A stretch of DNA of 64,000 bases from Podarcis cretensis (taxonomy: Eukaryota): the NCBI GenBank assembly GCA_951804945.1, contig OX638150.1:44020001-44084000 (forward strand), in the 5' to 3' direction. The notes under the pieces are model-generated. The model saw nothing but the letters and a program-made list of their open reading frames with translations. It searched no databases and was not told where the DNA came from. Every line of letters begins with the position of its first letter. Positions within the stretch are counted from its first letter, which is position 1. The position numbers and the translations under genes are program-made. Shown one piece after another: positions 37,084-63,924 of this stretch.

Positions 37084-37400
37084 TGGCCTTGGATGAATCA
37101 CCTGGGTTACGTTTATCCCTCCCTGCGTCAGGCTTGTTCGTTTTTTTCCAGAAGGCCTTGGAGTCTGCCAGAGCATCCTGGGAAAGATGAACATCTTGTA
37201 AACAGGCAGCCTGTGGCCTTGGAGCCGCGTGCAGCCCTCTCTGCCTAATTTCTACCCAGGTGCTTGACAGGCAGGTAGAAAGAGAGGCCTGCTCCTCCTG
37301 CTTTTTGGGTTCTGTCCTGTCCAGGATCTGACAGGATCTCTTGCAAAGGAGTAGCGGCACTTGACAGGCAATGATACCTTCCCTGCCTGCTGGTATAAAA
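37084..37400 (+). promoter_or_regulatory. Putative TGFBR3L promoter: TATAAAA (37394-37400) with SF-1/NR5A1 elements TGGCCTTGG (37084-37092, 37214-37222) and AGGCCTTGG (37153-37161)
   Basis: Motifs read directly. A locally GC/CpG-richer region follows, with a strong donor CG|GTGAGT at 37800|37801. Confidence 0.6.
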
Positions 37401-37800: not shown

Positions 37801-39455
37801 GTGAGTTCCTGGGATCTGACAAGGGAGGAGAGACAGACAGACACACACACACACACACAAAGAGAGGGAAAGGGAGCGGATGCTTCTTCTTGTAAGTCTC
37901 TGCTTTCTTAATACCTTTCCTCCACTGCTGAATTCCCTTAGAAATAAACAGCTTGCCACATAAACCATGCCCTCCTCCCCTCTCACTTGTAACTTGACCC
38001 TCCTTGTGGGCTTAGAGTTATTTTTAACCTCCCATTGACCCGCATAACTTTTTTATTATTGTTGTTCATTAAACTATGCCAGTCTGGAGATAGGAGGCCT
38101 TGAATTGGCTCACGGTTTCTGCATCCCCTGGATTAAGCGCTGCGAGTCCTCCCACTTGCTTCCTGTCCTTCAGTTCAGGTAGAACTTTGTCCCACCTCCT
38201 CCTCCTCTATTTTTCTCCTAACCTGCATCTAGATCCACTGGCAGTGGGAGAGCTCTGCTGGGCAAGGTAAGTGTTCCTCTGGCATTCCCTCTCCACGTTC
38301 GGGAGCTTGGCTTGCTGGGAGGTGGAACATGTCCTGGAAACTTTTAATTACAGCCAGTCTAATCCTGTAACACTGAATCTTGCTGTCTCAATGCATCCTT
38401 CTTTTAAAACAGAGCCATAAAGGTGGGAGGGAAGTCTTTGTGGGAAACTTGAGACAGGAGGGAAGAACGCCTTTTTGACTGACAGAAGTTGGGACCAGAA
38501 GGTGAGGGAGAGTAAGTTGCCTTCAGAGAAAGATTGCAGATCGAGTCTATAGAACTGAGAAGCAAGTGTTGGGCAAAATCCTTCTGGCTAGAGACAGATC
38601 ATCACAGTGGATAATACTGAGCAAAGTGGACCGATGATCTGGATTAGGCTCACACATCTTCCCATTTTCAAGGAGTAGAAGCCATTAGATAGTAAACAAT
38701 TTGGAAGCAGGGTAAGCTCTGGGGTCCCCAATGTCTCACTCATGACCATCATAGTGCCCTCCTCTTGGTGCCAGTCAAGATCCCCTGACCCCATTTTTTT
38801 TTAAGAAATTGAGGCTTTTTGTGATGAGGAGGGGGGGTTTGCGGGGGAGACATTGCCTGCTTTTTGTGTCACATTTATTTCTTTTGAGTGGGTAGGTGTT
38901 TAGTCTGGTTTCTGGGGATGAGGGAGGGGTGTCTGAGCATCACCCATTTTTCTTCAGTGAAATGGGTATTCTTAGATTTCTGACTGTTTGCTCAGATTGA
39001 AAAGGTTGGAGACCCTGGCTATATGCTATACCCTTTCACTTTGTGGTGTTAATCGGAAGGGTGGCCACCACCTTCCCCTCTGCTTACAATTGCAGAAGCA
39101 CCCACTGCACCAAAATGAAGTCCTTCCACCACCCCATCCTGCTATGATTGCGCATATGACAGGATAGTTGAAGGAATGTATAATCCGTATTAAGGGAGAC
39201 TGAGTATGGTCTGTATGCTTGTTTCTGTAGCAGATAGATCAGGAACGGAGAGAGGAAATGTTGAAGTTCTGTCCCAAAATCCGAACCACAAATTGACTGG
39301 TATGAGGTCTTGAGGGCTGGAAAGTGTTTCCAAGTAGCTCAGAGGTCGTGCGACGGCATTCCCTTCAACTCCTGTGCTTTCTTGCCCTGGCTTTGCTTTC
39401 TTTCCTAGGGTGGAACAAGAGGGAAATCACAGCTTTTCTTTGGGTTCTGAACACC

Positions 39456-39540
39456 ATGCATAGAAACTGCCTGCATATTGATCACCTATGGAGACAGTAC
39501 CTCCTCCTGCTGTTTGTCGTCTGGGGGTGCTCTGGGACAG
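39456..39540 (+). CDS. TGFBR3L: TGFBR3L-like signal peptide exon (MHRNCLHIDHLWRQYLLLLFVVWGCSGT)
   Basis: ACCATG start context, hydrophobic core, small residues at the cleavage site, phase-1 donor G|GTAAAG. Confidence 0.75.
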
Positions 39541-42500
39541 GTAAAGTTTAACAGAGTGGCTATTGTAAACATTTAAATGGGCTGCACAATAATTATCCAC
39601 ACCAAAGGTGTAAAACGTTTTGCTAAAACAAAACAAAACAAAAACATTATTGTAGGGGAGCTGTCCAGGATACATTGCTGTATGTATCCTGAAGTGTACA
39701 TGTAAAAAAGAAATTAGCAGTCTTAAAATGCATTTTTCTTTGCAACCTTGAATGTAGAGCAGGTCTTTCAACTTTGCTAAATAGACATGTGTGCGCTCAC
39801 ACAGAGCCATTTGGACTTGTCAAATTTTCTTCCCTTGCAGCAGAATAGGTAGATGAAGTTGTCAGAGTATAAATGTATTCAATGGGGTTTTATACTAGGG
39901 GTTTGAGGGACGTGGGTGGTGCTGTGGTCTAAACCACTGAGCCTCTTGAGCTTGCCGATCGCAAGATTGGCAGTTCAAATTCACACAATCGGGTGAGCTC
40001 CCATTGCTCTGTTCCGGCTCCTGTCAACCTAGCAGTTCGAAAGCATGCCAGTGCAAGTAGATAAATAGGTACTGGTGCGGCGGGAAGGTAAACGGCGTTT
40101 CCATGTGCTCTGGTTTCTGTCACAGTGTTCCATTGTGCCAGAAACAGTTTAGTCATGCTGGTCACATGACACGGAAAAGCTGTCTGCGGACAAACGCCAG
40201 CTCCCTCAGCCTGAAAGCAGAGATGAGCGCTGCACCCCAAAGTCAAATTCGACTGGATTTAACCATTCATGGGTCCTTTACCTTTACCATACTAGGGGTT
40301 TCCCAATTCTGCATGATGCTTCTGATGCCCTTTGTCCTGCTTCTCTTTATTGGATGTACCTTCAGTGAGCAGCTTGGATTTACAGAGTGTCCATCATTCT
40401 GTACCTGCTTATTTTTCACAGGATGCAATTTCAGTTCCTTGATAACCAAGTACACACAGCTAAGGGCACTTTTAATCTCCAGCTCGGCACTCAGTATTTG
40501 TTTTTGACATTGATTACCATAGGGCAGGTAGATGCTGCCTGTGGGTTGTTTATAGCACAGAGGCTGTTAAGCTATCTGCTGAATTCATAGCCAGCCGACC
40601 ATGGTTGCTTCCTATAAAGAGAAGAGCCCAGGCTTCCAAAGTTGACCAGGAGTCATCGTTTCTGTTCTGAATGGTGAGGGGAAGGCACTCTGCACTTGCT
40701 GTAAGGTACTTCTGCTATTTCTTCACATTCCCAAATTGGGGGGAAAACATCCACGTTGAACACTCCTGCAGCTGTACTTTGGTATCTGGTACAGCTCTCT
40801 GTGGGACATGGGTGGCGCTGTGGGTTAAACCACAGAGCCTAGGACTTGCCGATCTGAAGGTTGGCAGTTCAAATCCCTGCAATGGGGTGGCTCCCGTTGC
40901 TTGGTTCCTGCTCCTGCCAACCTAGCAGTTCGAAAGCACATCAAAGTGCAAGTAGATAAATAGGTACTGCTCATGGCGTTTCCATGCGCTGCTCTGGTTC
41001 GCCAGAAGCGGCTTAGTCATGCTTAGTCATGCTGGCCACATGACCCGGAAGCTGTACGCCGGCTCCCTCGGCCAATAAAGCGAGATGAGAGCCACAACCC
41101 CAGAGTCGGCCACGACTGGACCTAATGGTCAGGGGTCCCTTTACCTTTACCTTTACAGCTTTCTCTTCCTTTCTCATGGTGCCAGAGCATATTCTTTCAC
41201 ATGGAATGTTAAGGCAGGTTGAGTTGGTAGAATCCTCATGTGCTAAATGGAATTGTACCATTTCAGGCTGCAGGTGGTGTGTGTGTCTTTTTTTAAACCC
41301 CTCCCCCCTAAAGCTGTCTGTGTGTAAAATTCTAGTACACTGAGGAGAAAGAATTAGCTCCCTGGGGCAACTTAATAACTCTGCCCAGAAGCATAGGTAG
41401 AAATGAGAGAGCCCAGGCCAGGCAGCTCCTGAGGTCACCCTGAGAATATTTGGTAGCTTTTGTTCCTTCCAGTATTTTAAATTGAAAATTGCCTTGGTAG
41501 AAAGGCAACAAACCAGCCCAGCGTGCTCCCTACTGTGTTAGCTTTCCTATTACAAGGAACTTTTTACATTGTAGTCTCAGAATAGGATATAGTCTGGTCT
41601 GCCACCACATTCTCACCCAGTCTTATTGTTGTGTATGTAATGTGTAGCCCCCGTGCAGGGCTAGCAGCTTCCCTGTAATTATTTAATTCGTAAAATGAAT
41701 GGTCAGTGGTTAGAGCACCTGCTTTGCATGAAGTAGGTCCCAGCTTCATTTCCCAGCATCTTCAGGTAGGACTGAGGTTGTCCCTAGAGAGCTGCAGCCA
41801 GTCAGTGCAAAAGACAATACTCTCATCTTCATAATGAAAACAGACTTTAAGTAATAATTCTCTAGGATTGAGTGCCAAACATGACCACTGAAAAACAAGA
41901 GGAGTGCCATCAACATGCCCAGGAGAAACGGGGGGGGGGGGGGGGAATGGAACTAAGAGGGAGGAACCCCCCCCCCAAAAAAACCACTTTCCCACCCAGC
42001 AAAGGCTCTCCATGCTGAGTATCCTTTGGAAAAGGAATTTAAAGGGAAGGAGGAGACTGAGCCCCTTACAGTTTATAGTATAGCTGACTGAAAAAGAAAC
42101 ACTTTTTTCCCTTGTACAACTTGTACAATCTAAAAATAAGCCAGTAAGCCATTGTTAGGAGCAATTCACAGTGACCCTCCCCCCTCAGTGTGGGGACCAT
42201 GAAATGCACACCAATCCATTTCTGTCCCATCATACCAGTTCCCCCAGAGTTTCCTTGTTTTATTTTTCCCTCCATCATCCTCAGTCATTGGCCAGATATT
42301 CCATATTTTTTGTTTCTCAGACACAGAATGAATTATGCAAAAAAGAAAAGAAAAGAAAAGTTAAGCTGGTGTATCATTTTGAGCTCAGGCACCTGAGCAC
42401 TTTGTGTTTTGGGAGAAAGGGGATGCCAAATGTACAGAGTTTTGGAAACTACTTTTCTGAAACCCCGTTTCTTCCAGCATTGCTCTTCTCCTTCCCCTGC

Positions 42501-45500
42501 AGCCGCCTGGCACCATCTTGCTTGCCTCCCCATGTCTGCCTCTACCCCACATCCCGTCCTCGGCTTCTGGGAATCACTGCGAAAAGGCACCGGATGTACC
42601 AGCCGGGGCCGCTCTACCCTGGGGCAAGAAGTCCATGTCATCAGCCTGAAGAAGGGATTGCCGGCAAATGGCCAGGTATGGGAGATCCCCATCCATACCA
42701 CCTTCCCATGTATGAGGCTGTATGATGGGTCTTGCTACAGCTCCATTGGATACCCAAACAAGATGGCCGTTCAGCTTGGCACTACAGTTCAAGGTGTGCC
42801 AGTCAGTCAAAAGGGCAAAACTCCATTTCAGTCACTTCTTCACAGTTGTCAGGGCCTCTCTTAAGTCACAGAAGTGTTAGGTTAGCCAAGTTGTGAGAAG
42901 CAAAGAGGAACACTCTTGCGCAGGGCCTGCTTAGTGCTGGGGGTGGGAACATGCCTCACCTGCTGAACATCCAAGGGGTAAGTTGCTAGGCCGCCTTTGG
43001 TGGTATATCCTACCTTCTCTGGTTCTTTTCCAATCCCTTCTCCATTTCGCTCTTTGATCATGCATGGAGAAGGTACCTGTCCCCTTGATCCTCTTTCAGG
43101 TAACTCTGATAACTCTGGACCCAGATCCCCACGACAGAGGCCCCATCTTTGTGCTGTATTCCCGGAAGCCTGTGCGCTGGGTGTTGCTGTCTCCCCCTGG
43201 AAAAAACTGGACCTTCCAGGTGAGATGGGATAGAGGGCCAAAGGGCCTAGAGAACATCATGGGGATCACTGAGAGGGTCGTTGGAGTCCCTGCTCTACGC
43301 AAGCATAGAAGATGAGTGGCAGCTATGGGAAGGGTGGATGGAAAAGCTAATTTGCTACCTCCACAGCACTTTTACAGAATACTTTCAGATCTAGCTCTGT
43401 TTGTCTTCAGAAGCATCTTGTGTAGTAAGTTCCTATTCTTCCCATTTTACAGATGGGGGAAATTGAGGCTGAGGGAGGCTTGCCTAAGGCCACCCAGTGA
43501 ATCTGTGGCTGAGGTGGAACTTGAACCCAGATCTCCCAGATTAAAGTGCAGAACTGTTCAACTTTAATGCACTCCCCAGCGTGGGGTGTCAGAGAGGGGG
43601 GAGGTTCTCCAGGCTAGTATATTTTACCTTTGCCTTCCTCCTATCTACAGGTCTCCCCTGGCTCTAATGTTTCAGCCCCGGGGCCAGTGGCTTCTGCTGA
43701 GACCAACTTACCAAAGACACCCAAACGCCTGCTGAAGTGGGCACGGAGGGAGCATGGAGGGGTCACCTCTCTGGCTGAATACCGTGGAGTCAACAGAATC
43801 TACACACGCCTGGGGGCTGGCATGGGCAATGAGGGTAGATATCGGCTCTGAGGGAAAGGGTGGCATTATGGCTGTGTGTCCTACAATTCCCCATCCCTGG
43901 CCACTGGCCACCCTGGCTGGGGCTGATTGGAGTTGCAGTCCAGCAACATATGGAGAGACACAGGTTCCCCACTTTCGCTACTGCAGTGTGATAAGCAGGA
44001 GGAGGGCAGGCAGCTGGTCTTTTGGGTCCTGGGCTAATGCAGTAACTTTGCAGAAGTTGTGCAGGTCTGGGTCTGGTCAGTGCCTGGAAGGGAGACCATC
44101 CAGGAAGGAAAGATCTGTGCACTGCAATCATAGAGGGAAGATGGAATATACCGGTATACACGGTACAGATAAATAAGACTCACCAGTATCAACTGGAGAG
44201 CAGTTGCCAAAGAGTTTGCATTGCTTGCAAAAAAAAAAAGAGTAAATCGCAGCAGCTCTTCTGTGACCATTCAGTCCAGATACTTCATTCCTTTCCTTCT
44301 CCAGATAGGATTGCCCCAGCCGCTTGCAGATTAAGTAGGAATTTCCTGACCCCAGTGCACTTTGCCTCCAAGTGCCAACTCCAGCCTCTGAGAGTTTGCC
44401 TGCATCCTGACCCTCCGCAAGTCCTTGAAGTTCACATCATCCTCTCCAAAGGAGTTGCACCAAGGTGCGTGCCAGGGAGGCATCGCCAGAGCTTCAGCAT
44501 GTGGCTGTTGAACCCGGGGGGGGGGAGCAGGGGGTTGGCAAAATGTTCATAATGAGATGCCATGTCTTGAACAGGGAGGTTGAAATTGTTCTTAGTGTAG
44601 ATGGGGAAGGGGGATGGTGAGGAAGAATGAAACCTATGCAAGAGGCTGCCTATGATAAGTGACCCTTGTGTTAAAATGGATAAGATATAATAAACAGGAA
44701 CATGGAAGCTGGTTCATCTAGCCTGGTACTGCTGACACAGACTGGCAGCAGATCTCCCATGTCTTTCTCAGCTCTGTCTGGAGATGATGGGGATCGAATC
44801 TCTGACCTTCTGCATGCAGAGCAGTTGCCCTGCCACTTAGCTACGGCACTTCCCCCGAAAGTCAAGGCCAGATGGACACTGAGCCAAAAACGAGTAGCGA
44901 CAGTGGCTGGTATTAGGCCTTGAATATTGGGCAGGGATCTGTGAGTTGGGGGACGGGTGGCGTGGGGCTTCACTGGCTTCCATCATGTGCTTAATCCTGT
45001 TGGGGGGGGGCAGCCTGCTCTCTTCTAGGCCCACCCTGGCTCATTTGACTGTGGAACTTCATGCTGTCCGAAGGCCCCCCCACTGGGGACTGATCTTGAT
45101 ACTGAAGAGTGAGGGAGCTGCTGAGTGGATGGTTCACACCCACCGCCTCACTGGCCGGCTGCACGTACTGGTAGGGGCAGGACCTGCTCTGGGTATAGAT
45201 CTGTAACGCTCTAGGCCAGCTAATACACTTCTCTCTCTCCCCCTCCCCAAGTTGGTGGCAGTGGCACACATCTGGAAGGGAGCAGGGCACACATGTGCTC
45301 AAAGCCAGATACAGTGGTACCTCGGGTTACAGACGCTTCAGGTTCCAGACGCTTCAGGTTCCAGACTCTGCTAACCCAGAAATAGTACCTCAGGTTAAGA
45401 ACTTTGCTTCAGGATGAGAACAGAAATCATGCGATGGCGGCGCAGCGGCAGCGGGAGGCCCCATTAGCTAAAATGGTACCTAAGGTTAAGAACAGTTTCA

Positions 45501-48500
45501 GGTTAAGAATGGACCTCCGGAACGAATTAAGCTCTTAACCTGAGGTACCACTGTATCGCCAAGTGTGTCATCAACATCAGTACAAAACTGGGTGGGATTT
45601 ATTCCTTAATTAACCTGAGGTACCACTGTAGATGCATTATGCAGAATTGCAACCTTTCCTAGTGGAAGCAGTTTGGTAATTTTAGATGCTTGGCTTCATG
45701 CTATTATAAGGGTTATATTATGGAGGGTTCATTCTGCTAACTCCTGCCTTCACAGGCCCACTAGTGAGCTTTACCAACCCTCTTCCATAAGCGTCCCCTG
45801 CATTCTCCCTATAACTCTAGGTTTGCCTCCTCCTCCTCCAGCCTTATTTTTTTTTTTTTGCTAAAGTGAGCCAAGGAGTCTTACTTCCTGGCTCCAACTC
45901 TCCACCCCACTAGGCTACTCCCTCTTGGGAGTCTGTCTCCATGCTGCCATTTGATTCCCCTGGACCGTCTCTTGTTTATGGTGTGCCTGTTGCTGCTGCT
46001 CTCCATGTCTGGGCCTTGTATTGTAACTCAGGCTGGGATTCCTTTCTAGGCTTCGCACAAAGTCACAGTCAGCAGCACAGAAATGGATCTGCCTCTGACT
46101 GTGACCCAGCGGACGTCCCCTCGGCTGATGACCCTCGACCCTTTGCAGTTTGCAACGGAGCAGAATCTGCCTGCCTTTACATCCTACGTTGAGGCTGAGC
46201 GGGTGAACAGGTTTCTCCTTTTTGTTGGGATGAATGGTAGGTTTGGAGGGATTCAATGGACATGAATGGGAAAAGTGCCCACCAGAGAGCTTAGAGGCAA
46301 ACCACTAGTGACCGCTGCAGTAGATTCCTGGCATTTATATTCCAGTTCCTCCTGCACCATTTTACCCTAGGGTATACAACCTCAGTTTTATTTTAGGAAT
46401 GCACCAAATCAAAACATTTTCAGCATGAAAAGTATGCTTCCAAGGGGGCTGAAATGGTACACACCCAGCCAAAGCATATATTTTGGTGCTTGTTAACAGA
46501 TATTTTGCTGCTTCAGTGCCATTTTCCCAAACCCTTTTGAGAGCTTATTTCCTAGTCGTTATGTGATCTCAGCCAATCAGGATTCACGTAGGGATGATAA
46601 ATGGCATCAAATAGGCAATCAGCTGTGGCTACAATGGTAAAATCAAGAAGGGCAAATGAAACTGCATTGCATTCTGAATGCTGAGCCCGTGGAAGAGAAC
46701 AGGAAGGCGTGCCATATTATGTCAGAATGTGCAGACCTTTCACTTAGGTAACAGAAGGAATAGATACAGGGTTGCCTCACAGGCCTCTGTGAGCTGGGCA
46801 CATGTGTCCTTTGGGGCCACACTGGTGATGCTTGGAATAGATCATATTCTGATTAACAGCAGCAGTGTATAAGGCATATGATTGCATCACACCCACACAC
46901 CTGTATTTCCTTTGTAGGGGCCACACCTCCTCTAGAAGAGCCAACACTCTTTTGGCCCATATTTCTGCATCCTCCCAGTTTCACAGCCTCTCAACAGGAC
47001 TTTGCAGAAGCCAACACAGCTGGCGGGGAGGTGACAAGGCAAGACTTTGGGGGAGAGGATGGTTCCGTTACCTACCCACCGTCTACAGCCAAAGCAGAGG
47101 GGACAGAATCTATCTTGTGTCTTGGGGACCGTAAGCCTATTCTTGAAAACCAGGACACTCAGAGAGTGAGTAGCCAAGGATGACATCTCCAGAAGGACAG
47201 AGGGAATCTATTTCCTACAGTGCCATTTCATGTGGATGTGGATGGATGGGTATTCTCTTGCCGTTGTACATCAATACCGCTCCACAGACCTGTTTTTCTC
47301 CTGCAGGTCTCCTGTGTTTCACCTTCTCCAACCCAGATATCTCCTTCAGAAGCCGCAACGGCCTTCCAGGATCCCCACCTTCACCTTGGCAATGCCCTCA
47401 TTAACCTAGAGCTCTACAACACAGAGGCTTTTGCCAAGCAACTTGGACCTTTTGTCGTCTCAGCCAACAGCCTTGTCTTTGTGGAGGTAAAGCGGACGAT
47501 GAATATGCAAGAGCTGGCATTGGACGCAGCAGTTACACGCCAGAATCTTGTCCCTAAGTGATTCCTCCTCTGTCCAGAGATCTGGTGGTTTGCAGCACTC
47601 CCTGTTTCTCTCAGAGCCTCAAACAGGGCAGTTGACCTGCTTGTTGCTTTATGGGGGGGTGATAAACTTACACTGTAGCTCTCAAAGGGACGAAGTAACA
47701 GGGGTGATTTGCCATCACGTTTTACCAGCTTAGAAGGGCAACGTGCATCCCAGGGAAGGTCATGATTTTGTAAGCAAAACAGCAAGGAATAGACTTAGCA
47801 GATTTCATACTGCGGCCCAATTCAAGGTCCAACTTTATGGTTGGTTGGCAATGAAAAAATAGGTATAAAAAGACAATTCCTGGATGCCAAGAGCCAAGAT
47901 TGGGGCAAGTATTCTTTGGTGAGAGAACCCCAGCAGAAATTTAAAACAACAAACATCTAGCAAAGAAAAGCATGGAAATATAGGTTGTTATTCTTAGAAT
48001 ATGACTTTCTAAGTTCCTTCCAAATTTCCCTCTTCTTCTGGCATAGAAAATACCATGTGTGTGGCAAGTTCAAAATGGTTTACTTACAGACTCTGCAATG
48101 ATCAGATTCATGTGCTTTTCAGTGCAGCATTCAGAAAACGTTGGCAGCAAAACTGGCACTTGTGTTTGCAGACTAGATGGTGTTTCCTTTTTCCTCCAGG
48201 CTTCCTTGGCAACCTATGACTTGTCTCTCAGCTTCACCATCCAGAAGTGCTTCATCTCTAGCTCCTCAGATGCTTCAGAGGCCTCAGCGTATCTGCTGGT
48301 CCAGCACGGCTGTCCTGTGGCCGCCGCCCAAGTCAGGCTGTGGAAACCCGAGCTGCCAGGCCAGGCCCAGGCGTTGCCTCTGGGGTACCAGGAACGCCAG
48401 CGACTGAGCTTTGTGTTGAAGCCACGGTCCAATGCCTCCATCCACTTCTTGCACTGCCGTCTGACGCTCTGCAGCAGGGGTTCTCAGGACTCCGCCAGAC

Positions 48501-51500
48501 CCAAGGGCGCAATCCCCAAGGTCTCTGGCTCCCTGGGCTAGGGAACCCTGTCTTCTAGCAGCTATCTGAGGGCCTGATAGCGCTACTGCTTCAGAATAGG
48601 CTCTCCTGATTGGGGATGCTTATGGAGGAAACTGATATGCCACTGCAAGCTCTCCACTTGGCCCAGAAGTAGCCAAAATGGTGCCCTCTGCTCAATGAGG
48701 ATGCTGGCTTCCCAATTGCCAGCACCTCAGCTAGCATGGCCATTGGCCAGGGGTGATGAAAATTGTAGTCAATTGGTATCTAGGGGGGCACCATGTTGGC
48801 TTATTATTATTGCCTCCTCTGAACAGCAATATCTCTCAAGTGTTTCAAGCAGAGGTATTTCCTTTGATGTTTGACTGGGGGTTGAATGGGGGCCCCTCTG
48901 TGTGCTTTGCCCCTTAGCTATGACTGGCCCCTTCCAGAAATCCTTGGTCCATCTCTGCTCTGAGGGTGGAAAGGGTGGTGCCTAAGAAAAGATGGAATAA
49001 AGAGGAAAGCGAAACCCCTTGGAGGGGTGAAAACCCTCTGGAATGGGTCTGTGCAAAAGAGCCTCCCAGTTAGCTGTAGAAATGAGCTGGCTGGGCTTAT
49101 GGAGAAGCAGGTGGGATTAACTGGGCCAAGGCCTAGCTCCCATTGCTGGGATGAGGCACTCTTCTGAGGCAGGTTTTTGTTTCAGTGTCAGTCTGAGAAC
49201 GAGGCCTGCAGGGGAGAAGAGGAGGCGGTCCCAAGCCGCTTCCAGCGCACCATCACAAAGCCTATGCTAGTGACTGTGGAGACTCCGCTCAGAGCTGCCT
49301 CTCCTGGCCCGAAACCAGGTACTTTCCTGTGGGTTCTAGATAGCAGCCAGGAGAGAGCAGTTGGCTTGAAGGCCTTGCAGTTCAGCACCCTGGCTCCATG
49401 CTGGAGAAAACTGTCCTGCAGAGTGAGTGAGGAACTGAAAGAAACTGATGGGGGAGTCCTGCTTGCTGGGGAGATGGAAGTGTCTCCTTGTGCATCTCTC
49501 CAGAGCAGAGGTGGTGGACCTGTAGCCCTCTAGATATTCTTGGACTCCAGCTCCCATCACCTCAAGCCACCATGGCCAATGGCAAGGGATGATGGGGCTT
49601 GTAGTTCACCAGCATCTCCTACCCAGGAGATGGATGCCTTGGATCTCACCATGCTACAAGCCCAGACTTTGCCAATGGCATCTTACATGTTCATCCTGAG
49701 TGAAGCAAAGTAGCAATGATGGGCAGAGTTATGCACTCATTTCTTTTCTCCCCCTTGCCACCCGGAGGCTATTTTCTTCAGACACTCCCTCAGATTATCT
49801 GTTCCTTCCTTGACTTTGGTGTCTTTTTCTGCAGCTAAGGTCCCAGACAAACAACAAGGAAAAGCACCAAAGGATGCAGCCCACAAGCGGAAGACTCAGG
49901 TAGTCCGAAGTAAGTAAACATCCCCATGCTCTCTTGCTGGCCTTGTTTCCCAGGGATTTGGGGACTGAAATTGGTTTTAGACTGGAATTCTACTCTTGGC
50001 TCTAGGGGGGGGGGGAGTGGAGTTGAGGATTCCTGCAGCTGTGGGCTAGAGCAAGAACTCTGATCCTCAGACTTTTTCATTCTGTATTACCCCATTTCGG
50101 GCCCTGGCCCATCTCCCCTTCCTGGACAGAGAGTGAGAACGAATTTTTGTGCTCCTTCTCCACACATCCTCCCCATATCCCGCTTCTCTGTAGCTGCAGC
50201 TGCGCCAGGCCAGACGGTCCCCGCAGTAATTGGGATAGCTATTGCAGCCTTCCTCATCGGCATCTGCCTCACTATTGGGCTCTGGTTCATTTACACCTAT
50301 ACAGGTAGGTATAGAGAGGGTCCCCTCACTGCTGTAGGTACCATCTATTTTACTTGAATGGTTGATTTTTGGCAAAGCCTGCGGAAGCACACCTTAGCAT
50401 TTCTGTAAAGGGAGACTGGGCCACATGTCCGAGATGGGAAAACTCTAAATTATAGATCATGACACCTTTCCTCAACCTATTGCCTTCCAGCTGTTTTGGA
50501 TTTTAGCTCTCATCACTAGCTAGCCATGCTTGCTGGGCCTGGAGTTGTTCTCTCAAGCATCTGGAGGGCACCAGGTTGGGGCTGGTTGGCTTTTGCCAAA
50601 TGTCTGCCTCCATCTCTTCCGTCAGAGCCAGAATATGCATTATGCAGTCACATGTACCAAGGTTGAGTTACAGTAGGGCATGGATCTTGGGGTGGAAGCT
50701 GGCAGCCAAATGATTCCCATTGCCGTTGGCTTCTAGGAAGGATCATAGAGTGGGAAACATGACCTTTAGGCGATCGAAGATGCAGCAGCTGAAATACATA
50801 TTGGAATCAATGTTACAAAAAAGTCTGGAGGGGGATTATGTGTCTAGGAAATTCACATCATTATTCATATTGGTCTGCTTTTGCACATTTGTACTTGTCC
50901 ACCCATCCACCATGGAAAAAATAAAGAAATAGAAACAGAACAAATAGGATGATAAAAAGGCCAGACAGCCAAAGGAGGAAAGTAAAGGTCAGAGGGGAGG
51001 GAGAGGGATTTATGTGCACATCCATGATATTGATCCCAGTCTGCTTTTTATTTCTGGTTATTTTTTATTATTAGACAGTGCACATGCATTTTCACACCTT
51101 TCTCTGAAATGAGGCGGTCTGAACAAAGCTTTAATTACTAAATTTTAATGCCAGCCTTGAACTTGTAGGTGAGTCGGCTTCCGGGAGGAGGAGCCAGCCT
51201 GCAGCTGAGACTGGTAAGGTGACACATTGGCTTTTGAGAAATCCTTCATTTGAGCAGAGGCTTTGATTCTGCACTCATTTCCATCTCTGGCTGTGAATGG
51301 AATCGGTGGTGCACACTTATAATAACTTTTAATTATTTTTCAATGTTTAATTGTTTCAAACTGGTTCTTTAGTTGATAATTTCAACATTATAAGCACCTT
51401 AGAGGTTTGACTACAACTAAACAGTATACAAAATTTGTTAAATAATAATGAATGCATATTGCATGTGTGTCCAGTTCAGCAACCACAGGCACATATGCAC

Positions 51501-52113
51501 CTGGAGACCTTCCTGGTGCCTGCAAGCCCCCTTCCCTCTGCTGAAATAAGGCTTCCAAAAAGTCACCTATTGTAGTTAATATAAGGCAGGGAGAGTTATC
51601 TTCCAGCTATACCTAGAGATGCTGGTGAACTGAACCTGGGACCTTCTGCATACACCTGGACTCGTTTGAAGCATCCATAATGCAAAGGCAGAGCCAGGAA
51701 TTCAAGAAAGCTGTCCTTACTAAAGCAGGTTGCTGTATTCAAGAGAGCCAGTTTGTTGCCTCCAGGATTAGCCAGTTTTAAATATACCCAAGCTAGGGCA
51801 GTTTTGCTTCATCTCAATACTTAAAAGTGGAACATTACAAATATGCTAAGACTTGGAGAAACTAACATATGCAAATAGGAAGAGGGTGCATTTGTTTACC
51901 TCTGGAAGGGGGTTAGTGTGGTGGTGAGATGGATGGTTGCAGTGCAATTGGGGGCGGGTGGGGGGCACTGCTGCATTTTCTTTCTTCCTCCTGCTAGACC
52001 CTGTAGGACCATCTGCTCCAAAGCGTGAAGACACTTTGTCAGCTCCAGCTGCAGCTGGCCCTGCACGTCGCACGTGGTGCTCTACCCTAAGAAGCCTCTA
52101 CCGAAGAAGGTAA
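39456..52113 (+). CDS. TGFBR3L: TGF-beta type III receptor-like protein (betaglycan/endoglin family), ~759 aa: signal peptide, orphan domain, vestigial ZP-N, ZP-C, TM, cytoplasmic tail; exons 39456-39540, 42503-42675, 43100-43219, 43651-43834, 44305-44464, 45029-45170, 46050-46236, 46918-47165, 47307-47486, 48200-48520, 49186-49318, 49835-49909, 50194-50304, 51169-51213, 51998-52113
   Basis: 15 exons with AG/GT borders and compatible phases sum to 2280 nt with no internal stop. Motifs align exon by exon to TGFBR3 (HPV..GCxSRG..QEVHV; LLKWARREHGGVTS; NFL; EVHII; LILILK; NLELYNTE; CFIS..CP; RLSFVLKP..FLHCRLTLC; TITKP; GIAIAAFLIG..LWFIY). The symbol comes from the position directly downstream of MAP2K7. 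Confidence 0.88.
39907..40288 (+). mobile_element. Sauria SINE with 13-bp TSD ATACTAGGGGTTT
   Basis: Homologous to the 34959 copy; ACCTTT tail; TSD at 39892-39904 and 40289-40301. Confidence 0.9.
40803..41154 (+). mobile_element. Sauria SINE
   Basis: Same head, body and (ACCTTT)n tail; short TSD-like tacagct. Confidence 0.9.
41697..41820 (+). mobile_element. Old tRNA-derived SINE fragment (a related reverse-strand copy lies at ~44730-44850)
   Basis: tcagtggttagagcacctgctttgcatg.. is a tRNA-like head without an intact cloverleaf. Confidence 0.45.
42503..42675 (+). CDS. TGFBR3L: TGFBR3L-like orphan domain exon (HPVLGFWES...GCTSRG...QEVHVISL)
   Basis: Matches betaglycan HPVQALMES..GCASRG..QEVHVLNL. 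Confidence 0.9.
43100..43219 (+). CDS. TGFBR3L: TGFBR3L-like orphan domain exon (VTLITL...PIFVLYSRKPVRWVL)
   Basis: Matches betaglycan VTLHL..VVFLLNSPHPLVWHL; phase 0-0. Confidence 0.85.
43435..43575 (-). mobile_element. MIR/CORE-like SINE fragment
   Basis: cccattttacagatggggaaattgaggct..gaacttgaacccagatctcc is typical of the CORE-SINE region. Confidence 0.55.
43651..43834 (+). CDS. TGFBR3L: TGFBR3L-like orphan domain exon (VSPGSNV...LLKWARREHGGVTSLAE..NRIY); 3' border 43834 (GT) or 43819 (GC)
   Basis: Matches betaglycan VSEGSVV..LLNWARKEYGAVTSFTE..NIYIKVG. Confidence 0.88.
44305..44464 (+). CDS. TGFBR3L: TGFBR3L-like orphan domain exon (DRIAPAACRLSRNFL...EVHIILS)
   Basis: Matches betaglycan DQVFPPKCNIGKNFL..EVHIIEL; phase 1-2. 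Confidence 0.88.
45029..45170 (+). CDS. TGFBR3L: TGFBR3L-like orphan domain exon (LILILKSEGAAEWMV..GRLHVL)
   Basis: Matches betaglycan LILILKCKKSVNWVI..GSLKII; phase 2-0. Confidence 0.88.
45312..45553. mobile_element. Tc1/mariner-type MITE with TIR CAGTGGTACCTC and TA TSD; an extra right TIR at 45611-45628
   Basis: TA|CAGTGGTACCTCGGGTTA ... TAACCTGAGGTACCACTG|TA. Confidence 0.85.
46050..46236 (+). CDS. TGFBR3L: TGFBR3L-like last orphan domain exon (ASHKV...FTSYVEAERVNRFLL)
   Basis: Matches betaglycan APNSI..ITSYTMAPVANRFHL; phase 0-1. Confidence 0.88.
46918..47165 (+). CDS. TGFBR3L: TGFBR3L-like linker plus ZP-N first strand (SILCLGDRKPILENQDTQR)
   Basis: Phase 1 acceptor and phase 0 GTGAGT donor; end resembles betaglycan SVKCDNEKMIVAVEKDSFQ. 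Confidence 0.7.
47307..47486 (+). CDS. TGFBR3L: TGFBR3L-like ZP-N last strand/IHP/ZP-C start (VSC...GNALINLELYNTE...VFVE)
   Basis: Matches betaglycan FNC..HGNITFNMELYNTD..VYVE; phase 0-0. Confidence 0.88.
48200..48520 (+). CDS. TGFBR3L: TGFBR3L-like ZP-C core exon
   Basis: FTIQKCFIS..LLVQHGCP..RLSFVLKP..FLHCRLTLC is the ZP-C signature. Confidence 0.92.
49186..49318 (+). CDS. TGFBR3L: TGFBR3L-like ZP-C end and external hydrophobic patch (CQSENEAC...RTITKPMLVT)
   Basis: Matches betaglycan CVPPDEAC..KTFTKPLAVI. Confidence 0.9.
49835..49909 (+). CDS. TGFBR3L: Probable basic stalk exon (KVPDKQQGKAPKDAAHKRKTQVVR)
   Basis: Good acceptor tttttctgcag and donor A|GTAAGT; 75 nt; symmetric phase 1-1; open frame. 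Confidence 0.6.
50194..50304 (+). CDS. TGFBR3L: TGFBR3L-like transmembrane exon (VPAVIGIAIAAFLIGICLTIGLWFIYTYT)
   Basis: Matches the betaglycan/endoglin TM [26 protein letters not shown]. Confidence 0.92.
51169..51213 (+). CDS. TGFBR3L: TGFBR3L-like juxtamembrane cytoplasmic exon (GESASGRRSQPAAET)
   Basis: Resembles betaglycan GETAGRQQVP; tag|GT..G|GTAAGG. Confidence 0.7.
51998..52113 (+). CDS. TGFBR3L: Probable last coding exon (DPVGPSAPKREDTLSAPAAAGPARRTWCSTLRSLYRRR*); may instead splice at 52109 to 53692 (ending ..RF*)
   Basis: Strong polypyrimidine acceptor; phase-compatible open frame; no homology support. Confidence 0.5.
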
Positions 52114-52275: not shown

Positions 52276-53210
52276 TAATAATAATTCAATAATTTATTAT
52301 TTATACCCTGCCCATACGGCTGGGTTTTCCCAGCCACTCTGGGCTGCTTCCATCAAAATATTAAAATACAATAGTCCTTCAGATATTAAAAGCTTCCCTA
52401 AACAGGGCTGCCTTCAGATGTCTCCTAAAAGTCTGGTAGTTGTTTTTTCCTTTGACATCTGGTGGGACAGTATTCCACAGGGTGGGAGCCATTACTGAGA
52501 AGGCCCTTTGCCTGGTTCCCTGTAACTTTGCTTCTTGCAGTGAGGGAACCGCCAGAAGGCCCTCGGCGCTGGAGCTCAGTGTCTGGGCAGAATGACGGGG
52601 GTGGAGACGCTCCTTCAGGTATACTGGACCGAGACTGTTTAGGGCTTTAAAGGTCAGCACCAACATTTTGAATTGTGCTTGGAAACGTACTGGGAGCCAA
52701 TGTAGGTCTTTCAAGACTAGTGCTATGTGTTCTTGGCGGCTGCTCCCAGTCACCAGTCTAGCTGCCGCATTCTGGATTAGTTGTAGTTTCTGGGTCACCT
52801 TCAAAGGTAGCCCCATGTAGAGTGCATTGCAGTAGTCCAAGTGGGAGATAACTAGAGCATGCACCACTCTGGTGAGACAGTCTGCAGGTAGAAAGGGTCT
52901 CAGCCTGCATACCAGATGGAGCTGGTAAACAGCTACCCTGGACACAGAATTGACCTGCGCCTCCATGGACAGCTGTGAGTCCAAAATGACTCCCAGGCTG
53001 CACACCTGGTCCTTCAGGGGCACAGTTACCCCATTCAGGACCAGGGAGTCCTCCATACCTGCCCGCCCCCTGTCCCCCCAAAACAGTACTTCTGTCTTGT
53101 CAGGATTCAACCCCAATCTGTTAGCCGTCATCCAATCTCCAACCGCCTCCAGACACACTCACAGGACCTTCACTGCCTTCACTGGTTCCGATTTGAAAGA
53201 GAGATAGAGC
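52276..53210 (-). mobile_element. 5'-truncated L2-clade LINE carrying the C-terminal part of the RT ORF
   Basis: ORF 52379-53158: WMTANRLGLNPDKTEVL, SLGVILDSQLS, LDYCNALY, LQLIQNAAARL, LHWLPV; AAT-rich tail. Confidence 0.9.
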
Positions 53211-61564: not shown

Positions 61565-63619
61565 TCATTTGCTCAGGGCTTCTTCGAAGATGATCTCGCC
61601 ATTGGGCTCGGTGGCAGAGGCAGGGTCGTCCACATCGCTATCCGTGGTACCGTCGCTCTCCTTGCCGGAGCTCTCAGCCCCCCGTAGAAAGTGCGTGTTG
61701 TGGGGCGACAGCGGATACAAGACATCCTGCAGGGCACCTACCACCATGGGGCTGGTCAGCAGCTCCTCGTCGGAAGAGTGCAGCGAGTCGTCATCCACTG
61801 CCAGGTGACTCACAATGTGGATGCCGTCAAAGCCCATGGAGTCCTCAAAAGGCTTCTGTCCCTTCATCAGCCGAATCTGCAGGGAGAAGGCGTTAGGGCA
61901 AAGATAGGGGGGGGGGTCCTGCGAACCCTCAGAGTACAACTCCCACTGTCTCTGACCCTTTGGCCATGATGGTTGGGGCTGACAAGAGTGGGGAGCCCCA
62001 ATGTATCCAGAGGGACGCAGGCTCCCCACGACTGCACTGGGACAGCCATGATGGACTTGGCACTCTGCCTAATGGGACCGTTAGATGACATTAACTCTGA
62101 TGCAGAGAAAGAACCCACGGTGGAGAGGACGCCTCACGCAGAACATGCACAAAAAGCTCCTGAAAACAGTGGTGATCCTGTGCTCAGGGAATAAGTTGAA
62201 ATGGAAGCCGCGCCCCAGATCAGAGGGTTATCAAACAACATATACAGTCTCCACCCTGGTTGGAACAGAAGAGCACATTTGTCTGTGTTACATGAACATC
62301 CCATCCCAGGGTTGGCAAGGAATCTGGGCTGTGAAAATGAATAACTTTTGAGAGGGAAGACTTTTCCGCAGGTGTGCGAGAGGCAGAGATGGCTAGCTTT
62401 ACAGCAAGAAAAAGGGGTTGTTGTTTTTTACATCACATAGGCGTGGGGGGTAACTTACTCTGCACCTTCCATCATTACCCTAGTTCTCGCCCACTGAAAT
62501 CTCCTTCCTATGCCCTGGTGAGAGTCTTTGGAGCTCCTTTGCAGTGAGTTCCAACTGGTAGCCAACCACCTGGTTGACTCGCACCTTAAAAGCTGACTTC
62601 TGATCTCTATCAGCTCCTGAGGAAATCAGCAGTTTTGTAAGCCCCAGTCGCTTATGTCTGTTCTCCAGCTGGAGGCCCTGCACAGAAATAGGCAGCTGGG
62701 GAGAAGGAATGGGGACACAGACGGAGGCGTATTTGTATTCTTCGATTGCAAACAATAAATATTAAATCTTCAAAAAGAAAAACAGGCAGCCGTGACTTGA
62801 TGCAGGGTGCTAACGGAGGCCAGCAGAGAAGACACCAGAAGTCACACAACCCCAACCCCTTGGTGGATTCCTCCTCCCTTTCTCCTACTAGTTTGGGCTC
62901 ACCTCTGCCTTGAGCTCATCAATCTGATCCTTGAGTTCACGGATGTACTGGGAGGAGTCGGAGTTGTTGAGCTGGCCCTGAATCATCCCTTCTTCCCTCT
63001 GTGTGGAAGAAAGAAGAGATGGGAATTTACAAGGGTCAGATGCTTGGCAGAGAAGGAAGTGGAGAGAAAGCACATTTGCTGTTTCCTCCTCCCCTTTGTA
63101 TGTATTATTTCACAGACTGCACAAATGAGCAAGCACTTTGTCTACACTATACAAATTTGACACAGTCCATGTGGCTGATTGTTTACATTTTGAAAAAGGG
63201 AATTGGAGAAACAAGACAGTCTGTATTTCATGTACAGAATTCCTTATGTAAACAAAAGTTGAATGCTTGATCTTCAGGTCTCTTAAAAAGAAACACAAAA
63301 CTTGTAAGCTGTGTAAGCAGAACTAAATAAGGGGACCAACACTGGCTACCCCTGGTTTAAACAATGACAAATAAAACATGTTTTTAGCCCCCAGACCTCT
63401 CAGCTAGCTGCAGACACAAAAGGAACAACAGTTCATACAACAAGAAACAAATACTCCTGGGAGGAAAATGCTGCTTTAGGTACAAGGCAGGTTCATTGCT
63501 CCTTATCCTCCTTGCTCCCTAACCTGGATCTCCAGCTCAGCAATCCGCTGCCGCATCTCTGCCACTGCAGCCATGCTGTCGGCTTCTCGCAGGCGCACAG
63601 CCATCACCTCTTCTTTGCT
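61565..63619 (-). CDS. EVI5L: EVI5-like Rab-GAP (TBC/coiled-coil), last three coding exons: 63524-63619, 62903-62998, 61565-61876
   Basis: SKEEVMAVRLREADSMAAVAEMRQRIAELEIQ / REEGMIQGQLNNSDSSQYIRELKDQIDELKAE / IRLMKGQKPFED..DDDSLHSSDEELL..ALQDVLYPLSP..SDGTTDSD matches the EVI5L C-terminus; AG/GT borders, all phase 0. Confidence 0.93.
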
Positions 63620-63924
63620 CTGAAACAGAAAATGCAAGCCAGTGGCAGCAGCCCAGTGGAGTGCAAGCAACGAGGTCAGCCAATGGGGGCGGTGGGCAGT
63701 ACATTGGGGGCTGGGGGGAGGACCACCTGCAGTTTCTTTTGGCAGCTGAAGATCTCACGAGACCCACAATGAGTCACTAAACTACCTGGAATTCCCAGGA
63801 ATACACACAGGACACTGAATAAAATCCAAGACAGCGGCTAAAATCAAAGATGTCAGACATGCAGGAGCCCAGTCTCCTCTTCAGAATAAACAGACAAAAT
63901 CTGGGCTCTCCATGGATGTGTTTA

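Follow-up and report, generated by a model that had tools for sequence, protein, structure and literature searches.

The window analysed here, a 64,000-nucleotide stretch of Podarcis cretensis DNA (contig OX638150.1), carries a 15-exon gene on its plus strand at positions 39456-52113, and upstream of it, on the same strand, are the exons of the MAP2K7 kinase (Table 1). Counted from the start codon in exon 1, the coding sequence comprises 2265 nt, encodes 754 amino acids and contains no internal stop codon, and the splice sites are canonical GT-AG with compatible phases across all 15 exons. Exon 6 has an alternative in-frame acceptor at 45014 instead of 45029, which is used by the Podarcis RefSeq model and would add 5 aa to give a protein of 759 aa. 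The preliminary description had proposed six orphan-domain exons (42503-46236) that are spliced in frame to the ZP-C and transmembrane exons of a protein of about 759 aa. Exons 2-7 have identical outer limits, open frames and canonical splice sites, and the predicted length and compatible frames are likewise in agreement with that proposal. RefSeq proteins from Podarcis and Zootoca mirror the exon structure. Where translation starts is ambiguous: the RefSeq models of relatives begin further upstream, their open reading frame being extended in the 5' direction through exons that match 38115-38180 or 39215-39304 plus 39408 onward. Skipping of exon 12 would preserve the reading frame.

Table 1. 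Exons of the TGFBR3L gene model and the neighbouring MAP2K7 exons in the window.
Feature	Position	Strand	Content	Evidence or remark
MAP2K7 kinase exons	17543-20680	+	MAP2K7	best PDB match MAP2K7, E=4e-35 (MAP2K4, 4e-23)
Exon 1	39456-39540	+	start codon and 28-aa signal peptide, core YLLLLFVVWGC	donor CAG/gtaaag
Exon 2	42503-42675	+	orphan domain start, HPVLGF...QEVHVISL; conserved Cys 36 and Cys 60	PDB betaglycan orphan chain 7-63, E=2e-5
Exon 3	43100-43219	+	orphan domain	93% to Podarcis
Exon 4	43651-43834	+	orphan domain	betaglycan orphan chain 123-165, E=2e-7; endoglin E=0.03
Exon 5	44320-44464	+	orphan domain; Cys 190, Cys 214, Cys 206 (SKCQ); OD2 loop NFLTPVHFAS	betaglycan orphan chain 173-212, E=0.13
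Exon 6	45029-45170	+	orphan domain; counterpart of betaglycan TGF-beta binding loop, LAHLTVEL	betaglycan orphan chain 239-269, E=0.007
Exon 7	46050-46236	+	orphan domain end, QFATEQNLPAFTSYVEAERVNRF	alignment of Podarcis orthologue
Exon 8	46918-47165	+	linker and first strand of former ZP-N; ZP-N Cys1 (model Cys 413) kept	alignment; orthologue predicted disordered here
Exon 9	47307-47486	+	ZP-N Cys4 remnant (VSCVSP) and ZP-C start (INLELYNTEAF)	mammalian TGFBR3L homology begins here
Exon 10	48200-48520	+	ZP-C core	PF00100 E=1.5e-8; betaglycan ZP-C E=1.7e-13
Exon 11	49186-49318	+	ZP-C end (last two conserved Cys) and membrane-proximal stalk	alignment
Exon 12	49835-49909	+	basic juxtamembrane insert, 75 nt	in reptile TGFBR3L, not in TGFBR3
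Exon 13	50194-50304	+	transmembrane helix	hydropathy
Exon 14	51169-51213	+	cytoplasmic tail	comparison with RefSeq relatives
Exon 15	51998-52113	+	cytoplasmic tail and stop TAA at 52111-52113	comparison with RefSeq relatives

The encoded protein is arranged as a signal peptide, an orphan domain of ~320 aa, a ZP-N remnant of ~110 aa, a ZP-C domain, a transmembrane helix and a short tail. The signal peptide was assigned by visual inspection of the hydrophobic N-terminus encoded ahead of the orphan exons, while the single transmembrane segment (residues ~675-699) is the only one with a Kyte-Doolittle value above 1.6 and is followed by a tail of 53 aa. When the exons were searched individually against PDB sequences, orphan exons 2, 4, 5 and 6 matched the betaglycan orphan-domain chains in collinear order; exons 3 and 7 had no match in these single-exon searches, and both are covered when the whole Podarcis orthologue is aligned. 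With a profile constructed solely from TGFBR3 orphan domains, the joined model scored 120 bits and covered profile positions 2-344 of 349, and in the alignment Cys 36, 60, 190 and 214 (model numbering) were invariant across TGFBR3 and TGFBR3L. The collinear matches, profile score and four invariant Cys bear out the full betaglycan/endoglin-type orphan domain of the preliminary description. The extra Cys in SKCQ that it had mentioned beside the four expected ones is also seen in the alignment; this residue (Cys 206) is common only to Podarcis, Zootoca and Rhineura besides the window gene. Pfam searches with single exons yielded no orphan-domain match, a null that carries no meaning because the Pfam copy used has no PF26060, and true TGFBR3 is unmatched as well. 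Both PF26060 and PF00100 are listed as precomputed domains for reptile orthologues.

The ZP-C exon matches the ZP-C domain of betaglycan in the PDB as well as Pfam PF00100. A complete ZP module consists of ZP-N plus ZP-C, and in the lizard protein ZP-C is present and the ZP-N core is deleted. According to the alignment, the Cys2/Cys3 core of ZP-N is missing and Cys1 and Cys4 alone survive; the glycosaminoglycan (GAG)-attachment segment found between ZP-N and ZP-C of betaglycan is also deleted, and past the signal-peptide region the ectodomain has no Ser-Gly GAG motif. Pfam ZP-N was not detected in three squamate orthologues, whereas it was detected in the TGFBR3L proteins of turtle, newt and lungfish and in TGFBR3; turtle orthologues thus retain a Pfam-detectable ZP-N that is reduced to a remnant in the lizard.

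In the Pfam, whole-protein PDB and AlphaFold work, the window protein was represented by the Podarcis RefSeq protein, whose orphan domain is 98% identical. This orthologue matched human betaglycan (E=2.5e-54) along two stretches that leave a gap at the place expected for ZP-N. Its AF2 model has high confidence in the orphan and ZP-C parts, and residues 401-508 have a pLDDT below 50, so the ZP-N remnant is predicted to be a disordered linker. The top Foldseek matches of the model were the orphan domains of betaglycan (1e-23) and endoglin (1e-14), and its ZP-C matched that of betaglycan at 7e-13 with a TM of 0.84-0.88. The structural modelling, which the preliminary description had suggested as a check, is therefore consistent with betaglycan-type orphan and ZP-C folds in the orthologue.

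In mammalian gene order, TGFBR3L adjoins MAP2K7. Two turtle proteins (P0103 and P0115) that were mis-named "MAP2K7 isoform" are consistent with a MAP2K7-TGFBR3L neighbourhood. A maximum-likelihood (ML) tree was built on the columns from ZP-C to the C-terminus, for which the mammalian TGFBR3L sequences were collected by an exhaustive representative search and cluster look-ups, as a search from a short turtle TGFBR3L missed the mammals. In this tree the window gene falls inside the tetrapod TGFBR3L clade with 98/98 support, together with four mammals (marsupial and placental), and the true Podarcis TGFBR3 (P0158, 844 aa) sits in the sister TGFBR3 clade. In a tree of the orphan domain only, the window gene lies outside the starred TGFBR3 clade, and endoglin (ENG) is the outgroup in both trees. 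Given the upstream MAP2K7 and the placement in the ZP-C tree, orthology to TGFBR3L holds, as the preliminary description had proposed for this locus; in the phylogeny that it had called for, the gene groups with TGFBR3L and with neither TGFBR3 nor ENG. As a whole, the lacertid orthologue of TGFBR3L is the best explanation of the gene, with a probability of roughly 0.85.

Conservation was measured as protein-level identity per domain. Between the window and Podarcis muralis (P0086), identities were 98, 96, 93 and 100% in the orphan domain, middle, ZP-C and tail, respectively. The orphan domain is 71-73% identical to those of skink and snake and 55% identical to that of turtle (~310 aligned residues). 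Among reptiles it is the best conserved region of the protein, and each comparison places its identity level with or above that of ZP-C, whereas identity to the orphan domain of lizard TGFBR3 is just 28%. The domain likewise occurs in models from turtle, tuatara and lungfish (partial), and a full-length sturgeon protein with this domain is sister to the TGFBR3L clade. The low identity to TGFBR3, the position outside the TGFBR3 clade in the orphan-only tree and the presence in turtle, tuatara, lungfish and sturgeon support an orphan domain that would be ancestral and not re-acquired, in line with the ancestral architecture put forward in the preliminary description. A recent capture of TGFBR3 exons was rejected on the same identity and tree placement. 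Absence of the orphan exons would be a secondary loss in mammals and perhaps also in amphibians; how the losses are distributed is uncertain, because the alligator and amphibian models that lack these exons may be incomplete annotations.

That the gene might instead be an orthologue of TGFBR3 or endoglin, or a recent duplicate, is suggested by many RefSeq names ("TGF-beta receptor type 3-like" or even "type 3") and by a domain architecture that resembles betaglycan. However, Podarcis has a separate TGFBR3 (P0158), the orphan domain of which is 80% identical to that of turtle TGFBR3 and merely 28% to that of the window gene, identity to endoglin is 21-26%, and both trees and the adjoining MAP2K7 point the other way; this reading was rejected, and we give it hardly any weight. 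The loss in mammals is the precedent, and nothing beyond it, for regarding the orphan exons as decaying relics, part of a unitary pseudogene that is open by chance in the lizard. Such a reading is contradicted by the conservation of the domain, from 98% within Podarcis to 55% with turtles and higher than that of ZP-C, as well as by the open frames and canonical splice sites of all six exons, the invariance of the four structural Cys and the confident fold prediction for the orthologue, and it was rejected as extremely improbable.

A further alternative is that an internal promoter drives the chief product of the locus, a short TGFBR3L of the mammalian type, that the orphan exons are carried by a distinct or minor transcript, such as a soluble orphan-only isoform, and that the 754-aa protein is chiefly an annotation construct. 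None of the sequencing runs for the stretch is on record as RNA, the runs being DNA or small libraries whose kind is uncertain, and RefSeq contains isoforms with an orphan domain but without ZP-C in Eublepharis and Anolis carolinensis (P0092 and P0096), and short ZP-C-only models in some turtles and the alligator. These observations are outweighed, in our judgement, by the fit of the phases at all junctions between exons 7, 8, 9 and 10, by the failure to see an in-frame, ATG-led hydrophobic exon upstream of exon 9 and by the positions of the sole signal peptide, which precedes the orphan exons, and the sole transmembrane helix, which follows ZP-C. Moreover, the orphan and ZP-C parts are connected in over 30 independent species models, and the orphan domain is as strongly conserved as ZP-C. 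A locus that chiefly makes the short form is thus unlikely, while a minor short isoform may exist alongside the long form. That orphan and ZP-C exons are joined in the long TGFBR3L is a prediction from frame compatibility, conservation and the models of other species.

In pituitary gonadotropes, mammalian TGFBR3L acts as a co-receptor for inhibin B (Brule et al., 2021, PMC8673766), and its description as a single-ZP-domain protein, which the preliminary description had also given, is confirmed by the same source (PMC8673766). Like the lizard protein, it has a ZP-C with all six conserved Cys, a single transmembrane helix and a short tail, and the two share a clade in the ZP-C tree, with ZP-C identities of 37-39% between the lizard and the horse and marsupial proteins. 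Homology starts in exon 9: mammalian TGFBR3L is ~280-380 aa long, whereas the lizard protein adds the ~320-aa orphan domain, the ~110-aa ZP-N remnant and a basic juxtamembrane insert of 25 aa. The ectodomain of the lizard protein therefore differs from the single ZP-C of mouse and human TGFBR3L, and the extra domains bear on the description of the TGFBR3L family, not on orthology.

Betaglycan (TGFBR3) resembles the lizard protein in its domain order, four orphan Cys and predicted orphan fold, and the two are 28-35% identical. Betaglycan has the ZP-N core with Cys2 and Cys3 and the GAG-attachment segment, both of which are absent from the lizard protein; its loop PNSxxSAFQVD corresponds to a shorter ..LAHLTVE in the lizard, where L210 is replaced by P, its fifth orphan Cys (LKC) is Ser in the lizard, and its Ser/Thr-rich ...SS(T/A)A C-terminus is missing from the lizard tail. 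Endoglin, the other family member with an orphan domain and a ZP module, is ~21% identical in the orphan domain, for which the fold match was noted above.

In zebrafish betaglycan, the orphan residues that bind TGF-beta are F49, L208, L210, L213, F250 and D253, and there are five betaglycan residues whose mutation abolishes binding (PMC11865472). When these positions were mapped onto the alignment, L208 was kept in the lizard, and the others were replaced (F49 by L, L210 by P, L213 by F, F250 by H and D253 by V), such that three of the five residues at which mutation abolishes binding are substituted non-conservatively. Because key contact residues are replaced (L210 by P, F250 by H, D253 by V), the orphan site would be unlikely to bind TGF-beta in the manner of betaglycan. 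Together with the conservation of the substituted motif in both squamates and turtles, these replacements make a ligand range different from that of betaglycan plausible, and they lend indirect support to the separate ligand range suggested in the preliminary description. By analogy with mammals, ZP-C is probably an inhibin co-receptor in the pituitary, and the orphan domain is probably a second ligand-binding site on a flexible tether. We tentatively suggest, with slightly less than even confidence, that the orphan domain, which has stayed conserved throughout squamate and turtle evolution and has a LAHLTVEL version of the ligand-binding loop, would bind a ligand other than TGF-beta1-3, e.g., inhibin/activin or a BMP-class ligand, and that mammals would have reduced the protein to an inhibin-B-specific ZP-C stub.

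Work on TGFBR3L since 2021 has treated it as a minimal inhibin B co-receptor with ZP-C only, and as a possible target for fertility drugs. RefSeq already includes predictions of the long form from over 20 squamates and over 10 turtles, some of the entries being named TGFBR3L. Examples among the reptile RefSeq/UniProt predictions are the proteins of P. muralis (P0086, 808 aa), Tiliqua scincoides (XP_066469001.1, 757 aa), Varanus komodoensis (P0089) and Carettochelys (P0104, named TGFBR3L protein), which are counterparts of the window gene that differ from the present model in their N-termini and exon-6 acceptor. We found no paper discussing a reptile long-form TGFBR3L, and the database entries are automatic predictions without a published description; novelty is confined to the interpretation, because the sequence is already predicted in many reptiles. 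If the interpretation is correct and the ancestral form that reptiles retain is a complete paralogue of betaglycan under strong constraint in its orphan domain, the family has three orphan-domain co-receptors instead of two, and mammalian TGFBR3L is a truncated derivative, which would help to explain its narrow ligand range. The reptile proteins would then provide a natural system for the contribution of the orphan domain to the handling of inhibin and other ligands and for the evolution of ligand selectivity among betaglycan, endoglin and TGFBR3L. Given that non-avian reptiles are reported to have no LH receptor (PMC12360902), it may be speculated that inhibin control of FSH weighs more in these animals. 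The SF-1-like motif CCAAGGCCA, which is not enriched in the window, occurs at two sites, 37084 and 37214.

The three-frame reading of the window predicted a 15-exon gene on the plus strand, whose exon limits were compared with tblastn matches of the RefSeq proteins of Podarcis muralis and Zootoca vivipara. All of the junctions carry AG/GT and are compatible in phase, and the joined coding sequence of 2265 nt encodes 754 aa, with the sole stop at its end. The limits of the six orphan exons (E2-E7) in the preliminary description are identical to the exon 2 acceptor and the exon 7 donor, and its length of ~759 aa is obtained with the in-frame exon 6 acceptor used in the Podarcis model. The pyrimidine tract is better at the other acceptor (see the table), and either of the two may be used. 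Translation could start at the first position of the gene model or farther upstream, as in the RefSeq models. The preliminary observation of a long-form gene is confirmed, and this gene is both real and intact. Exon 12 (75 nt), whose skipping preserves the frame, encodes a 25-aa basic juxtamembrane insert (KVPDKQQGKAPKDAAHKRK) before the transmembrane (TM) helix. Such an insert is found in squamate, tuatara and turtle TGFBR3L but not in TGFBR3, and is typical of reptile TGFBR3L.

Positions of features in the window
Feature	Position	Strand	Remark
MAP2K7 kinase-domain exons	17543-20680	+	
MAP2K7 GxGxxG motif	17615	+	synteny marker
MAP2K7 11-residue stretch	19601-19661	+	synteny marker
MAP2K7 DVWS motif	20567	+	synteny marker
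CCAAGGCCA, site 1	37084-37092	-	exact; SF-1/NR5A1-like
CCAAGGCCA, site 2	37214-37222	-	exact; 130 bp spacing
TGFBR3L	39456-52113	+	start codon candidate at 39456
Orphan exons E2-E7	42503-46236	+	
Exon 6 acceptor, Podarcis model	45014	+	
Exon 6 acceptor, other	45029	+	
ZP-C Phe at GPC.. Cys site	47420-47470	+	residue ~476
ZP-C Ser at ..DLC.. Cys site	48215-48235	+	residue ~496
Exon 12	49835-49909	+	
259-aa open frame	52379-53158	-	
Long open stretch	61568-62068	-	
Long open stretch	62891-63109	-	
Long open stretch	63506-63754	-	

Upstream of this gene and on the same strand lie kinase-domain exons whose top PDB match is MAP2K7 (4e-35 vs. 4e-23 for MAP2K4). In turtles, P0103 of Mauremys reevesii and P0115 of Eretmochelys are named "MAP2K7 isoform" but are actually TGFBR3L-like or fused models, an artefact of naming or model fusion which indicates that MAP2K7 and TGFBR3L are adjacent in turtles. 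Exhaustive HMMER searching, for which the ZP-C exon was the query, and subsequent cluster look-ups identified long reptile proteins, short mammalian TGFBR3L of marsupials, guinea pig and horse, and proteins of amphibians, lungfish, coelacanth and sturgeon, while lungfish TGFBR3 as the query retrieved the true TGFBR3 of many vertebrates, including Podarcis. The ZP-C search also found P0003 and P0016 of the pipefish Dunckerocampus dactyliophorus, proteins of 1970-3058 aa with 6-9 tandem betaglycan-like ZP-C units. In the maximum-likelihood tree of the columns from ZP-C to the C-terminus (42 rows, LG+C20, rooted with fish endoglin), the window gene fell within a tetrapod clade shared with mammalian TGFBR3L (support 98/98), whose branching order approximates the species tree and whose separate sister clade is TGFBR3. 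In the orphan-only tree, the reptile TGFBR3L sequences fell outside the well-supported TGFBR3 clade. The TGFBR3L-locus identity claimed earlier is supported by both the upstream MAP2K7 and the phylogeny; the window gene is the orthologue of TGFBR3L, and its orphan domain is under constraint.

When exons were queried singly against PDB sequences, betaglycan orphan-domain chains were matched collinearly by E2 (chain positions 7-63, E = 2e-5), E4 (123-165, 2e-7; endoglin, 0.03), E5 (173-212, 0.13) and E6 (239-269, 0.007), and no PDB sequence match was found for E3 or E7 alone. The ZP-C exon matched betaglycan ZP-C (1.7e-13) and Pfam PF00100. The joined model scored 120 bits against a local profile of eleven TGFBR3 orphan domains and covered profile positions 2-344 of 349, so that the orphan domain is complete, as had been proposed. 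The P. muralis RefSeq orthologue P0086, whose orphan domain is 98% identical, was used as a stand-in for the window protein. Its match to human betaglycan (7lbg_D) at E = 2.5e-54 falls into an orphan stretch (82-401) and a ZP-C stretch (501-679), and ~220 ZP-N residues of 7lbg_D had no counterpart. In its AlphaFold2 model, the orphan domain and ZP-C are confident, residues 401-508 are disordered and a single TM helix is present. Foldseek matched this model to betaglycan orphan domains over about 340 columns (E = 1e-23), to the endoglin orphan domain (1e-14) and to betaglycan ZP-C (7e-13, TM 0.84-0.88).

By per-domain identity, the orphan domain is the most conserved part of TGFBR3L among the reptile orthologues (orphan/ZP-C identities of 98/93% with Podarcis, 73/66% with skink, 71/60% with snake and 55/50% with turtle); outside lacertids, the middle linker and cytoplasmic tail are 28-50 and 23-54% identical, respectively. 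The four expected orphan-domain Cys are unchanged throughout TGFBR3 and TGFBR3L, and the extra SKCQ Cys is confined to Lacertidae and Rhineura. Two additional ZP-C Cys (GPC.. and ..DLC..) occur in the TGFBR3L of most other squamates and are Phe and Ser in lacertids, including the window gene; a lineage-specific ZP-C disulphide may have been lost in lacertids.

The canonical ZP-N has a Cys1-Cys4 disulphide. Compared to betaglycan, all lepidosaur TGFBR3L rows lack the ZP-N core (Cys2, Cys3) and the GAG-attachment segment, and their aligned ZP-N is reduced to Cys1 and Cys4. No Ser-Gly site was found in the window TGFBR3L ectodomain beyond the signal-peptide region. Mutation of certain residues in the orphan domain of zebrafish betaglycan abolishes TGF-beta binding (Wieteska et al., PMC11865472). 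Of these residues, L208 is unchanged in the window TGFBR3L, and F49, L210, L213, F250 and D253 are replaced by L, P, F, H and V, respectively. The betaglycan binding loop PNSxxSAFQVD corresponds to a shortened ..LAHLTVEL in lizard TGFBR3L, a motif kept in every squamate and turtle TGFBR3L examined. The orphan binding surface of reptile TGFBR3L would thus be maintained yet different from that of betaglycan. The expression and ligands of TGFBR3L in the lizard can be predicted by orthology only.

A recent capture of the orphan domain from TGFBR3 is ruled out, because the window orphan domain is only 28% identical to that of Podarcis TGFBR3. A full-length sturgeon protein (867 aa) is sister of the TGFBR3L clade (support 90/84), and the turtle orthologues possess orphan, ZP-N and ZP-C regions. 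The simplest reading of these sequences is that TGFBR3L started out as a complete betaglycan paralogue, in agreement with the ancestral architecture suggested in the preliminary description.

In RefSeq/UniProt, long forms (690-870 aa) whose precomputed domains are PF26060 and PF00100 are present for >20 squamates and >10 turtles, and some of these proteins (Varanus, Carettochelys, Malaclemys and Chrysemys) bear the TGFBR3L name. Among 116 open-access and bioRxiv papers naming TGFBR3L, four also refer to the orphan domain; three of them portray TGFBR3L as a ZP-C-only protein, and the fourth is a preprint version of one of these three. Long-form TGFBR3L differs from these published descriptions, and its sequence is already in public annotation.

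The CCAAGGCCA pair lies ~2.2 kb 5' of the TGFBR3L ATG, and such sites are not enriched window-wide (3 found vs. 4.4 expected). The 259-aa open frame right after the TGFBR3L stop had no Pfam match at E ≤ 0.1 and resembles the C-terminal portion of a retrotransposon reverse transcriptase. The three long minus-strand stretches, which had no Pfam match, are coiled-coil-like and acidic Ser-rich, and are probably exons of the next downstream gene.
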